From assembly GCA_904063045.1 (NCBI GenBank), contig CAJFCJ010000006.1, positions 930,001-994,000 of the forward strand: a stretch of 64,000 bases of DNA. Reading direction: 5' to 3'. Origin of the DNA: Dimorphilus gyrociliatus. Its lineage: Eukaryota > Animalia > Annelida. The translations under genes were made by a program, and so were the position numbers. Under the pieces are notes generated by a model. That model was not told where the DNA came from, ran no database searches, and saw nothing but the letters and a program-made list of their open reading frames with translations. The stretch's first letter is position 1, and each line of letters opens with the position of its first letter. Shown piece after piece: positions 14,504 through 21,244 of this stretch.

Positions 14504-16373
14504 ATGGAATCGGATATTCTATCAGTAGCTGATTCTCGAATTGCTGACGCTAAAGCAAAGGCTAGACCTGGTTTGTTTCCCTTCGTTCTAGAATATTCTA
14601 AAAATACTTTCTCTTTATATTACTCTTAGAATTACAATGCTTCTCCATAGGCAAGTGTAGAATAAGATTTTATATCATTCAATTAACGCTTCAAACAGCC
14701 ATTATCTTTTTTCTAAATTCGACAAATTATTATTCAATCCATATTATTTTTATTGAATAACATAATTTAGAGCTAATTATTGACTTAATATGCCTTCTGC
14801 AGATGTTTATCTTCAATAATCAATGATGAATTGAACCACTTGTACATTAAATTCAATATTACTTTTTATTATTCCTCTTTGCATAGAAAGAAGCTTTTGT
14901 AATTTCAGTTTTTTTTCTAAAAGAAATAAATTTTGTGTGATCTGTGATAAATTAACTTCATCTTTTCTTACGACAAACAGAGTTACAAGGTGACGAAGGT
15001 TGGACAAAGTGTAATTATTATGAAAAGTTTGATTTATCATGGGAGCATATCGATGACACTCTGGAACGAGTAGATGCCAGAGTAGTTTCGGAAGAAGAGT
15101 TTATTGAACGATTCGAGAAACCTTATAAACCAGTAGTTGTAAGCCATGGACAAGATGGCTGGATGGCAGCTGAAAAGTGGACCTACCCTGTAATTATCTA
15201 AAACATAAAATATATATCATGACAAATTATAATTTTTTTCCAGCGACTGGCAAAGAAATATAGAAATCAAAAGTTTAAGTGCGGCGAGGACGATGATGGA
15301 TATTCAGTTAAATTGAAAATGAAATACTTTGTTAAATATGCAGCTGATCAGAAAGATGATAGTCCATTATACATTTTTGATAGCAGCTTTGGAGAGGTAC
15401 TGCAAATATAAAACTATTTCTATATGCATACAGTATTTCTCTGTTATAGCATTCGAAAAAGAGAAAAATATTAGAAGATTATCAAATACCGAAGTATTTC
15501 AAAGATGATTTGTTTAAGTATGCCGGTGAAGCCAAAAGACCACCTTATAAATGGTTTGTAATGGGTCCTGCTCGATCGGGAACTGGAATACACATAGATC
15601 CTTTAGGAACAAGCGCATGGAACGCTCTTGTTAAGGGTCACAAACGGTTTGTCTCCTCTGAATATTTCCTCATCAAATAATTTGAATGTCGAATAACTTT
15701 TTTGTAGATGGTGCCTTTTTCCTACAAACACACCTAAGAAACTGTTGAAAGTGGCTTCCGGAGTTGGGGGTAAACAAAGAGACGAAGCTATAACATGGTT
15801 TCAGCATGTTTATCCTCTAACTCAAATGCCTGAGTGGCCTGCTGAATTTAAACCTATCGAAGTAATTCAGAAACCTGGAGAAACCATGTTTGTTCCTGGC
15901 GGATGGTGGCACGTTGTTTTGAATCTCGATGAGACAGTGGCAGTAACTCAAAACTTTTGTAGTGTAACGTCTTTCCCTGTAATATGGCATAAAACTCTTC
16001 GAGGACGTCCAAAATTAAGCAAACGATGGTATGAAGCCTTGAAAAGGTTTAAACCCCACTTGATACCGATTGCTGATGCAGTCGATTTGTCCAAAAAGAC
16101 GCATGTCGTTAGCGACTCTTCGTCATCGAGTGATAGCAGTTCGTCAAGCTCGGATGCGGAGAGCATAGACTCTGATAGCGATTCGTCGGTTGGTAGTGCC
16201 GTGGGGATAGCACCATCACCGAACTCTTCATTGAGGCCCGCGGCTAAGAGAAGGTAGATGAGAGATATTTTTTATTCAATTGTTTGAAATTTTCAATTTA
16301 TAGAAAGAAAGGCCCGGAAAGGTGCAAAAGTCCATCCGGATGTTCATGCAACTCAGACAAAGTTACAAACTAA
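14504..16373 (+). CDS. JMJD6: JmjC hydroxylase/arginine demethylase JMJD6. Exons approx. 14504-14570, 14981-15189, 15244-15396, 15450-15646, 15708-16253, 16304-16373
   Basis: [11 protein letters not shown]|[64 protein letters not shown] (HxD), [23 protein letters not shown], poly-Ser tail. Confidence 0.96.
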
Positions 16374-16802
16374 TGAGAGAGTACTCGGGGAGGAAGACTG
16401 AACAAACATTACTTTCTTAAATGGTCTCCGAGAATGAAATTGTACACGTCAAACCAGAGTAACCTAATTGAATAAAAAGTCTATTTCGTTCATCTTTTTA
16501 TCCGTTGATCCTATGGCATTTTAAAAATTTTTTTTGCTGTCTAAGTGTTCTAGCATATTACGTATTGTTTTTATAACATAATCATCTAGATGTCACTAGT
16601 CCCGCTTAATATTGCTCTAGATATTACATATTGAATATGTCAAAAAAACAAATTGTTTGAGGTAATACTTCTCATTTTAGTTCATAAAAATGGCGGCTTT
16701 GGTTGCCTCCCTATAATATAAGTAATAAACGATATTTTCTGTGGAAGCAATTTAATATTTCAAAACTCAAGATTCTGCTGTCGCTCTATAAAGTAGTAAG
16801 CA

Positions 16803-17617
16803 ATGGCCCTGGAAGTATTGGGCAAAAGACTCCTTACAAGGGCCACAACTAACGAGGTAGTCTTTTAAATTATGTTACTTTAACTCCTATATTATCATTT
16901 ATGCTCTCTAAGACCGTCGAAATGAAGGAGCTTTGGTCTAACAGGAACGCTGTTATTTACTTCTTAAGACGATTCGGATGACAAATATGTAGGCTTTATG
17001 CTAAACAGGTTCGCCTAAATATATGAAGGACGGACAGATCTATTAAATTAGGTATAAAATATTAAACGTTTCAGCTATCTGAGATTGCAGAGCTACTTAG
17101 ACGACATAATACTGTTATCGTTGTTATTGGCGTAATGGAAGACGCTGGCAGCTTTCAAAGTTTTATGGATGGTAATTACCTAGACGGAGGTAAACGCTTT
17201 CGAAGAGAATTTTTTCCATCTCATTATATTGTAATTAGCATTCTCTTTACAGAGGTTTACACAGGCGATGAACAATTGTATCAGGACATAGGCTTTAAGC
17301 CATATTCATGCTGTGGACTTTGCTGTCTAGCGTGTACGTGTTGTTGTAGATCTGCCGTTCGTTCACAAATGAAGGGAATTCGAGACAATAAAATAGATGG
17401 TGATTTAGTTGGAAATCCTTTCAGGAATGGAGGAACTCTTATTATAAAAGATAACCAATTACTTTTAAGCCACATTCAGGAAACAGCGGACGACCACGTT
17501 GAAGTTATCCAAATTGTAAACATACTTGGTCTCACCCTGGATCAGTCTCTAAAAATAGTTACTAAGCAACCGAGGACAGTTTGTAATGACGAAGTTTGTC
17601 GGATTAGAAGAGATTAA
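16803..17617 (+). CDS. PRXL2B: Peroxiredoxin-like 2B / selenoprotein U family protein with in-frame TGA (Sec) in a UxxC motif. Exons 16803-16856, 16913-17008, 17075-17189, 17253-17617
   Basis: Spliced reading MALEVLGK...AVIYFLRRFG[TGA 16979-16981]QICRLYAKQ|LSEIAELL...FMDGNYLDG|EVYTGDEQLYQDIGFK...GDLVGNPFRNGGTLII...HIQETADDHV...VCNDEVC aligns with the PRXL2B-type LRRFGCxxCR motif, with TGA at the first Cys; SECIS in the 3'UTR. Confidence 0.88.
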
Positions 17618-17666: not shown

Positions 17667-17731
17667 TACGTATCGATGATGAAAAATAGTTAAATCCTTT
17701 TAAGGAATCTATTTTTTTGATGTTTAACGTA
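17667..17731 (+). promoter_or_regulatory. Eukaryotic type-II SECIS element (3'UTR RNA structure for selenocysteine insertion)
   Basis: AUGAU 17676-17680; helix II GAAAAAUAG 17681-17689 pairs with CUAUUUUUU 17709-17717; AAA 17692-17694 lies 11 nt after the core; apical mini-helix UCCU/AGGA; UGAU 17718-17721; helix I UACGU 17667-17671 / ACGUA 17727-17731. Confidence 0.88.
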
Positions 17732-18307
17732 TTTTGGCTTATCTCTTAAAAATCTTTATATGATTTATAGTATTTCTGTTAAAAATCAAAAATTTCTCTT
17801 TATCGTAAGGTAACTTCTTTCTAAAACATTGTTTTTGATTAAACAAATAAAAAAGAAATTAGCATAAAACTATTAGAAGTACTGTATTAAAATTCTACTA
17901 TTTCTAAAAATTCTTAAACATCAAACGGTGCTTTAATGCTGCATAAGTATAGACGAAGCACTTTCATAAGCTTGTAATTAATTGAATAACACCGCAGATT
18001 TTGCGTACGGCAGCAATAAAAAAAATTCAAAACAAAAGCCACCGTTATAACTCAGACAACTGCTTTGAAGCTTTCTTTTTTTAACATTTTTAGCCTGTTT
18101 TTTAATTAGAAAAAAAACGCCGGAAACGTACACACTCAAACGGGTTTATATCTTGCTCTACAGAGGAGAACGCGTGTATTTCTTTCTCTGTACCTAAATC
18201 GTTTTTGACAATAATAACGTAATCTTTTTCAATCTTTAATATACTATACAATGGAAAAAGAGAACAACGAGTAACATTGCTATTTTTTTATCATCTCTTC
18301 TTCTTAC

Positions 18308-18364
18308 CCCTCCTCCTCCTCCTCCTCCTCCTCCTCCTCCTCCCCCACCTCCCCCTCCTCCTTC
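18308..18364. repeat. (CCT)n microsatellite / C-rich tract
   Basis: About 11 perfect CCT units followed by degenerate C runs in otherwise AT-rich intergenic DNA. Confidence 0.95.
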
Positions 18365-21244
18365 TACCGTCACTCCCATTTTTTTGCTGAATTAATTATA
18401 TGGCTAGTGAAAAATATTACCAATCTTTTCCGTTTTTTACAAATTCTACTTGAAAAACTTTATCAATTATCAGTAAATGATTTTCGATCGATTACACACA
18501 AGCAATCCTTATTTAGTAATTGATACTTTAATAAAAGGTTTGTTATTAACAATATGAATAAGACATTAGAAATATAGAATATACAGAATAAATGAGTCTG
18601 AAAATTCTTTAATATTTTTCTCTTTTCTTAAAAGAAAAGCTTTTGAATTTTCTCTTTCTGTTCCACTTTTTAATATCATCTTTGCCAAAAATAGAATACA
18701 ATATACAAAGTTATTAGTAGGCAAACAATGTCAGCTAAAATCTTGGGTTTTTCTTTTAATAAATATCTTTACTATTTAAAGCCTCTTTACCGACTTTTGT
18801 ATCTGCAGTTATTAAAAATACAGATGGGAGATGAGAGGAAATTTCCAGATTTAACTATCTTATATGTCTCTAAAAAGGGCTGTTTTTTTTGTAGGCAATT
18901 TTGTATAAGTCTATAAATCTATGGTAAGATTTCTTGAAAATTTCTAAGGATTTCTGTTTAGAAATGGTATTTTTTTTATCTTTTAGTTACTCTGTCATAT
19001 ATTAAAACTAGTAAATACCATAAATATACTATAAAGCAGATTTGCGGTAATCTACATTTGTTAATCCATTCACCATTCTTTTAGTAGTAATATATTCAAC
19101 CAATAATTGGTCCATCCCTCGTTTCTCTGAGGTCGTTTACCATTGATCGATTGACTGTTTGTGAGTCATCATCAGTCTATACATCAATAAGAATAATATT
19201 TTTAAGGAATATACATTTTCCATACATTGTTCAGTGTATATTTGTAAAGATAGACAAGCTTTGATATTAATTATTCATATTTTCTTTTTGAAGAAATCTT
19301 CTCTTCCTTTGACTTTTATCCCTTTAAAAAAATGACGGTTCAAGATTCATTAATTCGATCTTTTTCATCTTTCATCTATCCCATATGTTTTGTGAACCAT
19401 CGAAGCTCAACGATTAAGCTAGTTAGCTTTTTAAGTCATGTTTTAGCGAAAAGAACGAGGCAAGTAGAGGCTTCATTTTATATCCACTAAAATACTACCG
19501 ATAAGTTAAAGGATCTTCCCTTCGCTCCCTCCTTCTTTATTCTCTTTCTTTGAACATTCCATTAATTGATCTCGCATCGTTTCGTGATTTTCCTTGATAA
19601 TCGAGACTCTTCTATTAATGAGTAGAGATTTAATTCTATTTCTATTATTCATTTAAACAATCATGTTTCCATACATATAGACTAATAAAATACATAGATT
19701 TTCTAACAGAAAAAGAAGAAGAAGAAGAGAATGTGTAGATTTACCTAAGAAATGAAAACGTGTAAAACCAAATAATTAATTGCATACACTCCACTTATAC
19801 ATTTTCGATAGATAGAAGAATTAGGACAGCAGTAAGCAATTAGCCCTTTAGGGGAATTTTCTTTTTTAAAACTATGACGTATGTCTTTGATTGAAACTAA
19901 CGGAAAAATTGCGTGAGCAGGTTTTTTCTTTTTTTTTTGGCATGTCTAGTAATTGACAGCTAATTTAATATTCAGTTCTTCAAAACACCGAGTAAATAAA
20001 AATAAGCAGGAAAAATTAATAAATTAATCTAACTAAATGTATTGCTAATTAGTGCGATTCTTCTCTTATTACTCATACATTACTTTGTAAGCTTAAAATG
20101 TTATATAGTCTATTCTATAAATTTATATATATATTGTTAATATGATATGTATGAATTTATTGTATGAGTTTGATATATTGAATATACTTTATTCTTTATT
20201 TCTGTGGTTTTATAGAAGGGTTTCTCAAGTTGAAATCGTTTTCGATTAAATTTTCTAGTGGGGTAACAAATGGCAAGTCATTAGTAAGCGAATAATTTAA
20301 TTAAATTCTCATACGGAAGGGGCTTTAATTACAATTTAACAGTAAGGTGAAGTTCAATGAATCAGTATGCTTAAAATTCTAAACATGGGTAGTACAAATT
20401 GCAGTGAAAAAGAACTATTTCCTGCTATACACAGCAAAAATAATAAGGTACGGCATTCCTGACTCATATTGTTTTATCAGCAATATTGTGAAATTCAATG
20501 CAAAAGGGCACCCGCCATGTTTATGTCATGGTGATATTATTCATTGTACCCCGTCTCCACAGTATATAGATATATGTATATAAGATATATATATATTTAT
20601 TCATTTTAGCTGAATTTATCATATAATTTAGCCGGCTTTAAGCATATGTCGAAGCAGTCTTCGAGTGGGCACCAGCGAACTGAGACTGATACATTTTCGG
20701 TATAAATTGATTTGCCACTACTTATTTAAGTGTTAGATTAGTTTCATAGATAATTTTCACTCTAAATATTTTGCTTAATGTCAATCTTTGATTAACATAA
20801 TTAAATTAGCTGAGAAAATGTTTCATAGTTATTATTTCATATCAATTTTATGAGGAATGCACTCTTTCTTTGTTGTACTCTTTGTTTTCTTCTGAGAACC
20901 AGTCTGCGATCTTGAATTTCGTTGTTTCCTTGAAATAGATTAATAATTTTTAATACTATTTCTTCGTTTCTATTGCAAGAGATGACATCTTCTTTACTTT
21001 ATTAACAGACTTAATGGATTTGTTCACAGAGCTTGACTAAATTTTCTGTCCCCATCAAAAAACACGTTTTTTTTTCGTTTTGCACTCAAAAGTATGGTTC
21101 GTAAGAAACGCAGGATTTCTGCTCTAGAATAAACACGCCCTTATTTTACACTTTGCTTTCTCAAAACAGCAACAAGTTGAATTACAACCTCTTAGAACAG
21201 GAGTTGATACCGTTGTTAGATATCAACAAGACAACAGAAATTCA

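Follow-up and report, generated by a model that had tools for sequence, protein, structure and literature searches.

Gene structure and annotation

The plus strand of the 64-kb window, which is the whole stretch of DNA that was analysed, carries a four-exon gene extending from an ATG at 16803-16805 to a TAA stop at 17615-17617. The window is AT-rich, with a GC content of 33.5%, and the introns are short. Exon 1 (16803-16856; MALEVLGKRLLTRATTNE) begins with the ATG and is delimited by its translation and a GT donor. The 5' untranslated region extends to at least position 16696, the start of the RNA contig from run X1. Exon 2 (16913-17008) is 96 nt long, comprises 32 codons, and holds the active-site motif RRFG-U-QI-C. 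Exon 3 (17075-17189) has a length of 115 nt, and exon 4 (17253-17617) encodes the C-terminal two thirds of the AhpC-TSA_2 domain, the C-terminal residues VCNDEVC, and the TAA stop. The three introns, with lengths of 56, 66, and 63 nt, are all bounded by GT..AG. The spliced exons form 630 nt in frame, corresponding to 209 codons and a stop. A putative polyadenylation signal AATAAA, read from the sequence, is located at 17846-17851 on the plus strand, within conserved sequence shared by L001 and L002, the two genomic contigs of a related species described below. The exons and intact splice sites proposed in the initial annotation of this DNA hold at all coordinates, and the sites are used in RNA.

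The sole internal stop in the spliced frame is the TGA at 16979-16981 (plus strand), which is codon 41 and the predicted selenocysteine (Sec) codon. It is embedded in the protein context ...IYFLRRFG-U-QIC-RLYAKQ and in the RNA context GGA UGA CAA. The TGT at 16988-16990 (plus strand) encodes Cys44, the presumed resolving residue at the second position of the UxxC motif, and the corresponding Cys column is invariant in family alignments. The open reading frame listing splits the gene into two halves given as separate pieces, one of which terminates exactly at the TGA 16979-16981.

In a protein search, the 160-aa open reading frame of the window matches the public protein model DgyrCDS4396 from Dimorphilus gyrociliatus (also P0001, 177 aa). 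This model reads ...TTNE|LSEIAELL..., with exon 1 fused straight to exon 3. It lacks exon 2 and hence the whole active-site motif, and stays in frame because the length of the missing exon is 96 nt. DgyrCDS4396 is an annotation artefact, in which the fusion of exon 1 to exon 3 evades the UGA. It exemplifies the mis-splicing of such genes by automated pipelines that the initial annotation anticipated.

Transcripts of the gene

The RNA data consist of Logan contigs from eight public sequencing runs; these are assembled contigs, not raw reads, and rare isoforms, which might include a minor form that skips exon 2, drop out of them. Transcript-like contigs from the eight runs contain the joints 16854>16911, 17005>17072, and 17187>17251, all with GT..AG introns and with exon 2 included. 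The last two of these joints define exon 3. Runs with named spliced contigs containing exon 2 are X19, X1, X3, X5, X7, X9, and X16. Two of them are from the same species: X19, where the contig is present at high depth, and X1, a coral-tank metatranscriptome that yielded a 692-nt contig. The contig from X3 is approximately 93% identical to the window and keeps the TGA, with synonymous changes at positions 16970 and 16975 beside it. In the RNA contigs of the four nearest runs (X19, X1, X2, and X3), positions 16979-16981 are unchanged. A joint between exon 1 and exon 3 (16854>17072) is absent from the joints listed for the contigs of the eight runs. The mature mRNA thus includes exon 2 with the UGA as codon 41.

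The initial annotation had named exon 16913-17008 with its TGA as the feature to look for in RNA, and an assembly error for TGC or TGT or the skipping of exon 2 as ways in which its reading could fail. The exon is present in the contigs, the TGA is carried by the RNA of the four nearest runs and by L001 and L002, and all spliced contigs include exon 2.

Family profile and position of the TGA

A family hidden Markov model (HMM) was built from 20 homologues, all from outside the dinophilid clade, and was searched against the 4,409 stop-to-stop peptides of at least 8 aa from both strands of the 64-kb window. Two of the 4,409 peptides are significant, and the next best has an E-value of 2. The peptide 16853-16978 (E-value 2.5e-7) covers profile positions 13-44 and ends exactly at the TGA, and the peptide 17066-17614 has an E-value of 1.2e-19. 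With X in place of the TGA, the spliced protein reaches 150.3 bits in one stretch covering HMM positions 6-192, whereas the annotated DgyrCDS4396 scores 90.3 bits and covers positions 49-192 only. In a MAFFT alignment the X of codon 41 is positioned in the first-Cys column of the family motif RRFGCxxCR, which confirms the placement of the TGA proposed at the outset.

DgyrCDS4396, which comprises exons 1, 3, and 4, matches Pfam PF13911 (AhpC-TSA_2) with 37.8 bits against a cut-off of 27, and exon 4 alone reaches 20.6 bits. Word-indexed protein searches gave few relatives (2 and 10 matches). An exhaustive phmmer search with DgyrCDS4396 of 1.84 billion representatives found 58 relatives with E-values of 1e-3 or lower, and the recognisable ones are prostamide/PGF synthase-like proteins, including fragments of mammalian and fish PRXL2B. 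The same query identified human PGF synthase (PGFS) in the PDB (entries 9USA and 9US9, E-value 2e-16); according to its title, entry 9USA is the C44S/C47S mutant of human PGFS.

The structural comparison was based on the AlphaFold model of P0063, a protein of the same clade and length that serves as a proxy and is not the window protein itself. The model has a pLDDT of 93.7 and contains a strand at residues 30-35, the Sec position at residue 41, and a helix at residues 42-52. In the alignment of P0063, the Sec position matches Cys44 of human PGFS, and Cys44 of the window protein corresponds to human Cys47. Judging from this proxy, the window protein probably has a thioredoxin-like fold with the (C/U)xxC motif at the N-terminus of helix alpha-1. 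In a Foldseek search with the P0063 model, all eleven Swiss-Prot PRXL2B entries came first, with E-values of 4e-19 to 7e-17 and TM-scores of 0.80-0.86; they were followed by PRXL2A (TM-score about 0.72) and then by PRXL2C (0.61-0.67). By best hits and the structural proxy, the window protein probably stands nearer to PRXL2B than to either PRXL2A or PRXL2C. Its nearest named and solved relatives are PRXL2B, or prostamide/PGF synthases, in line with the branch to which the gene had initially been assigned.

SECIS element

A type-II selenocysteine insertion sequence (SECIS) is located at 17667-17731 on the plus strand, and matches the Rfam family SECIS_1 with 42.3 bits (E-value 9e-7), above the gathering score of 35. 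The element begins 49 nt past the TAA stop, which leaves approximately 556 nt of mRNA between the UGA and the element. Its minimum free energy fold is composed of a 5-bp helix I, a 9-10-bp helix II, and a 4-bp apical mini-stem, and the element is counted as type II because this apical stem is present. The core is an internal loop between helices I and II, with AUGA (17676-17679) opposite UGAU, of which the 3' GA occupies positions 17719-17720; a second internal loop, between helix II and the apical stem, contains unpaired AAA at 17692-17694. The AUGA...UGAU core fits the eukaryotic consensus UGAN/KGAW given in the SECISearch3 paper (PMC3753652).

Covariation was analysed in a set of five sequences: the window element, one orthologue, and three paralogue-type transcripts. 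Across the five homologous elements, pairing in helix II amounts to 97.8%, with three compensatory pairs. Its covariation score is higher than those of all 500 shuffles and of all slid controls. With five sequences, the covariation is supportive rather than conclusive. The SECIS that the initial annotation placed after the stop is therefore borne out by an Rfam score above the threshold, the expected fold, and covariation in homologues.

The SECIS elements of related sequences differ from that of the window. Where the window element has UGAU on the 3' side of the core, UAAU is present in L001, L002, and the X9 contig, and the Rfam score drops to 31.8 bits. The A in the core of this lineage is derived, because the paralogues keep GA. 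An Rfam search at E-values of up to 1 detected no SECIS in the relatives' transcripts L004-L006, yet hairpins with the arrangement AUGA..AAA..GA are visible in their 3' untranslated regions. For these AT-rich SECIS elements, scores from the SECIS_1 model with its filters are too low.

Conservation of the UGA and selection on the coding sequence

L001 and L002 are genomic contigs of a related species from two runs, and contain the orthologue with the same four exons and the TGA. In the comparison with L001 the identity of the orthologous proteins is 86%. The Nei-Gojobori method gives a dN/dS ratio against L001 of 0.139 for the coding sequence as a whole and of 0.131 for codons 42-209; dS is about 0.5. 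The part of the gene after the UGA is translated and constrained, because its dN/dS is low at this level of dS. Codons 1-40 have a dN/dS of 0.18, indicating that exon 2 is under purifying selection. Together with the HMM E-value of 1.2e-19 for exons 3-4, the ratio of 0.13 for codons 42-209 substantiates the earlier claim that coding similarity continues past the TGA.

The TGA is common to the orthologues and to paralogues that are 44-52% identical. Two full-length relatives, P0062 and P0063, have the TGA called as W by a gene caller (RRFGWPLC and RRFGWSLC), and P0014 likewise carries a TGA-derived W in the column of codon 41. Their transcripts L004-L006 (of P0062 and P0063) have TGA at the W codon and the hairpins described above. 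The same genome contains a paralogue, DgyrCDS12822 (L003, contig CAJFCJ010000021.1), which is 47% identical to the window protein. Its exons are 54, 96, 115, and 362 nt long, compared with 54, 96, 115, and 365 nt here. In the paralogue, exon 2 contains a TGA at the corresponding codon, a separate SECIS is located past the stop, and the public model also skips exon 2. The paralogue SECIS contains AUGA, AAA, and UGAU and scores 25.2 bits in a narrow 101-nt Rfam scan; a scan of the whole 1.9-kb region of the paralogue reported no SECIS.

In a maximum-likelihood tree restricted to PRXL2B-like proteins, the Sec forms constitute one clade with support of 100/100. This Sec-form dinophilid clade has a branch length of 1.63 and is divided into three sub-lineages. 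Searches of metagenome contigs with an exact 40-nt exon-3 pattern and with a protein-profile scan found no further lineages. The 64-kb window contains no tRNA gene, including that of tRNA-Sec. The second gene with TGA and SECIS in this assembly points indirectly to Sec machinery (tRNA-Sec, SEPSECS, PSTK, eEFSec, SECISBP2, and SEPHS) in the genome.

Conserved block downstream of the UGA and cysteine-rich insert

Between a point just past the UGA and the beginning of exon 4, a stretch that takes in introns 2 and 3, the identity to L001 is 92-98%. This block of approximately 300 nt extends from the last part of exon 2 across intron 2 and exon 3 to intron 3. Elsewhere the identity to L001 is 72% in intron 1, 84% in exon 4, and 61% in the 5' flank. 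Exon 3 itself is 98% identical to that of L001, and in five other lineages it has only 2 differences in 116 nt. Among these five is the contig from run X16, in which 72 of the 432 positions compared in exon 4 (17%) are different. The block could be a cis-element for the inclusion of the Sec-encoding exon or for the efficiency of Sec decoding.

Several candidate explanations of the block were rejected. The pre-mRNA segment 16945-17280 folds no better than shuffled sequences (z of -0.58 on the plus strand and +0.53 on the minus strand), which does not favour an RNA structure behind the block. A hairpin resembling a selenocysteine redefinition element (SRE) is not supported either: segments of 100 nt taken from the mature mRNA downstream of the UGA have z near 0, and z is +0.15 for the 150 nt that follow the UGA. 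The best Rfam matches bearing on a small RNA gene in the block, SNORD95 with 19 bits and mir-137 with 16 bits, are far under threshold. The fold of a segment across the junction of exons 3 and 4 (17172-17334) has a z of -3.3.

It is rather unlikely that the UAAU SECIS of the sister lineages and the near-invariant block after the UGA are undescribed features of SelU genes that bear on UGA recoding. In the sister lineages with the UAAU core, the UGA is kept under purifying selection and the mRNA is strongly expressed. If the UAAU SECIS works, the tandem G.A/A.G rule for the kink-turn of the SECIS would have a naturally occurring exception.

Exon 4 encodes a cysteine-rich insert, YSCCGLCCLACTCCCRS, at 17303-17353 on the plus strand (residues 106-122), which contains eight cysteines. 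Similar cysteine-rich stretches are present in P0062, P0009, and P0022, whereas at the insert site DgyrCDS12822 has only two cysteines and human PGFS has none. It is a speculation that the eight-cysteine insert serves as an S-acylation site.

Alternative explanations of the in-frame UGA

The mRNA corresponding to DgyrCDS4396 might be real, or even the main product, in which case exon 2 would be a poison cassette whose UGA triggers nonsense-mediated decay. The skipping of exon 2 is frame-neutral (96 nt), the public annotation has the skipped form, and the surroundings of exons 2 and 3 are unusually conserved, as is often the case around regulated exons. However, no joint of exon 1 to exon 3 is listed for the contigs of the eight runs, and exon 2 is present in all contigs, some of them at high depth. 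The skipped product would be devoid of strand beta-1 and of the whole UxxC motif, and scores 60 bits lower on the family HMM. The purifying selection on exon 2 (dN/dS of 0.18 for codons 1-40) speaks against a poison exon, and a SECIS would be purposeless in a transcript from which exon 2 is skipped. This explanation is accordingly very improbable.

Since UGA is a standard stop codon, the gene could be a decaying pseudogene or could encode a 40-residue peptide only, but the 168 codons after the UGA have a dN/dS of 0.13 at dS of 0.5, and the mRNA is abundant in several runs. Furthermore, orthologues retain the TGA, as do paralogues with 44-52% identity, and the SECIS is conserved among these genes with compensatory changes. 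Termination at codon 41 has a slightly smaller probability than the poison cassette. The TGA could also be a sequencing or assembly error for TGC or TGT, or be read through as Cys or Trp in a selenium-free manner; in favour of this, most members of the family have Cys at the position of codon 41. Against it are the independent occurrence of TGA in RNA contigs from several runs and organisms, in both genomic contigs of the relative, and in the paralogue from the same assembly, which already contradicts an error, and the presence of a canonical SECIS. Of the explanations considered, error or read-through is the one hardest to believe.

Decoding of the UGA as selenocysteine is preferred over these explanations. 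The four-exon gene of D. gyrociliatus very probably codes for a thioredoxin-fold member of the SelU/PRXL2 family, 209 residues long, that is predicted to contain Sec and is nearest to PRXL2B.

Proposed mechanism

According to the established eukaryotic mechanism, SECISBP2 would bind the kink-turn of the SECIS and recruit eEFSec together with Sec-tRNA(Sec), and the ribosome would insert selenocysteine at the UGA of codon 41 rather than terminate. By analogy with the family, Sec41 would be the nucleophile at the start of helix alpha-1, replacing the first Cys of the motif, which is Cys44 in human PGFS. A selenenylsulfide between Sec41 and Cys44 may form during the reduction of a peroxide or endoperoxide, and a thioredoxin-type reductant would then recycle the enzyme.

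Significance

D. gyrociliatus is a reference for genome compaction. In the public proteome of this species, at least two SelU3 models have lost the catalytic exon to evade the UGA, and such models mislead phylogeny, domain counts, and estimates of selenoproteome size. The miniaturised annelid genome very probably keeps the use of Sec, with duplicated PGFS-like genes of the predicted Sec type. The UAAU core, the invariant block, and the cysteine-string insert could inform studies of SECIS tolerance and of the regulation of Sec-encoding exons.

Comparison with known SelU proteins

Jiang et al. (2012, BMC Genomics 13:446; PMC3473315) examined six invertebrates, one of them the annelid Capitella teleta. 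In that survey the commonest SelU group of invertebrates is SelU3, the lineage of prostamide/PGF synthases, and the Cys-form SelUs are all from deuterostomes (PMC3473315). A 2026 preprint equates SELENOU3 with PRXL2B and reports that among vertebrates Sec is present in SELENOU1 only. The genome of D. gyrociliatus has been described (PMC7854359), and a literature search found no paper pairing this species with selenoproteins. The initial annotation considered the Sec form of PRXL2B to be probably unannotated. This is correct for the gene itself, as the public model lacks the exon with the UGA, but the implied novelty was overstated, as Sec-containing SelU3 has been reported (PMC3473315). The gene is a correct but expected further case, the Sec form of invertebrate SelU3 having been known since 2012. 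It agrees with the idea that Sec persists in the SelU3 of aquatic invertebrates, whereas deuterostomes switched to Cys.

The invertebrate Sec-SelU3s of Jiang et al. likewise have UxxC instead of CxxC, a SECIS of the AUGA type in the 3' untranslated region, and a history of routine mis-annotation. The survey lists one SelU in Capitella, whereas the fast-evolving dinophilid clade contains at least three lineages of Sec paralogues. The window gene is set apart from the SelU3s of that survey by its eight-cysteine insert. The paralogue DgyrCDS12822 differs from the window gene in the absence of the cysteine-rich insert and in the weaker Rfam score of its SECIS.

Human PRXL2B (Q8TBF2; 9US9, 9USA) shares with the window protein the thioredoxin-like fold of AhpC-TSA_2 and has RRFG-(C/U)-xx-C-R at the same place. 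The human protein is 198 aa long, compared with 209 here, and the TM-scores of the P0063 proxy are 0.80-0.84. Human PRXL2B has Cys44 where the window gene has the predicted Sec41, and the two proteins are only about 30% identical. In the window protein, a cysteine-rich stretch takes the place of the helical region that follows strand beta-4, and the C-terminus VCNDEVC differs from that of human PRXL2B. The reaction of the PRXL2B subfamily is the thioredoxin-dependent reduction of PGH2 or prostamide H2 to PGF2alpha, and the window protein may share it. Vertebrate SELENOU1, which belongs to the PRXL2A branch and contains Sec in fish and birds, is a member of the same superfamily with Sec at the homologous first redox position. 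However, it represents another subfamily: PRXL2A entries match the P0063 model with E-values of 1e-12 to 1e-10 and 19-24% identity, whereas PRXL2B entries match it with E-values of 4e-19 to 7e-17 and 27-32% identity.

Paralogue and possibly misannotated relatives

The genome of D. gyrociliatus encodes a paralogue of the SelU gene, DgyrCDS12822, on contig CAJFCJ010000021.1 (L003:3001-3973). The paralogue has the same four-exon plan as the window gene, and its exon 2 contains a TGA in the context RRFG-U-SLC. The SECIS of the paralogue is located at L003:3911-3973. The Sec exon is skipped in the public model of DgyrCDS12822, as it is in that of the window gene, and the misannotation is therefore systematic. 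Many database relatives (P0004, P0007, P0010, P0013, P0014, P0031, P0048, and P0052) begin directly past the Sec/Cys position (M-FCR..., LCR...), are misjoined at that position, or have a tryptophan there (P0014, RRFGWLFC). This pattern suggests additional Sec-form SelU3 genes that were cut or misread by gene callers.

Detection and variation of the SECIS

The AT-rich SECIS elements of the paralogue contig L003 and of the transcripts of relatives L004 and L005 are missed or under-scored by the Rfam model SECIS_1 with default filters. A 1.9-kb scan of the paralogue region with SECIS_1 provided no match, and a narrower 101-nt scan of the paralogue SECIS scored 25.2 bits. SECIS_1 also found no match in transcripts L004-L006, yet AUGA/AAA/GA hairpins are visible there.

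In the genomic contigs of a related species, the kink-turn core of the SECIS elements orthologous to window positions 17667-17731 (L001:5385-5447 and L002:1650-1712) reads UAAU, not UGAU, on its 3' side. These elements reach 31.8 bits in Rfam, which is under the threshold. The sequence TAATG is likewise present at the SECIS core of the X9 contig, assembled from public RNA data. The lineage with the UAAU-type SECIS has nevertheless retained the TGA, with a dN/dS of 0.13 and abundant mRNA.

Conservation and surroundings of the gene

Window segment 16976-17275 runs from the last part of exon 2 through intron 3, with intron 2 and exon 3 in between. It shares 92–98% identity with the related species, compared to 72% in intron 1 and 84% in exon 4. 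In exon 3, each other lineage has only two differences, including one lineage that diverges by 17% in exon 4. Synonymous and intronic sites of the block are under constraint.

In the mature mRNA, a 100-nt window across the junction of exons 3 and 4 (17172-17334) has an unusually stable predicted fold (-30.4 kcal/mol, z -3.3), the only one so stable among 34 windows folded.

The gene upstream of SelU has its last exon at 15745-16257 (+ strand), which ends approximately 550 nt before the SelU start. This exon encodes the C-terminal portion of a JmjC/cupin hydroxylase domain, with a score of 48 bits for Pfam JmjC, and then a Ser/Asp-rich tail. A CCT/CTC trinucleotide microsatellite of approximately 70 nt (18296-18365), positioned downstream of the SelU gene, appears as poly-Gly or poly-Leu among the listed ORFs.

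Cysteine-rich insert

The window gene encodes a cysteine-string-like insert, YSCCGLCCLACTCCCRS (17303-17353), in which eight of the 17 residues are cysteines. The insert is located in the helical region C-terminal to strand beta-4 and may be a site of S-acylation or metal binding. Similar stretches are present in the full-length Sec-form relative P0062 and in P0009 and P0022, whereas the paralogue DgyrCDS12822 and human PGFS (PRXL2B) lack the insert.
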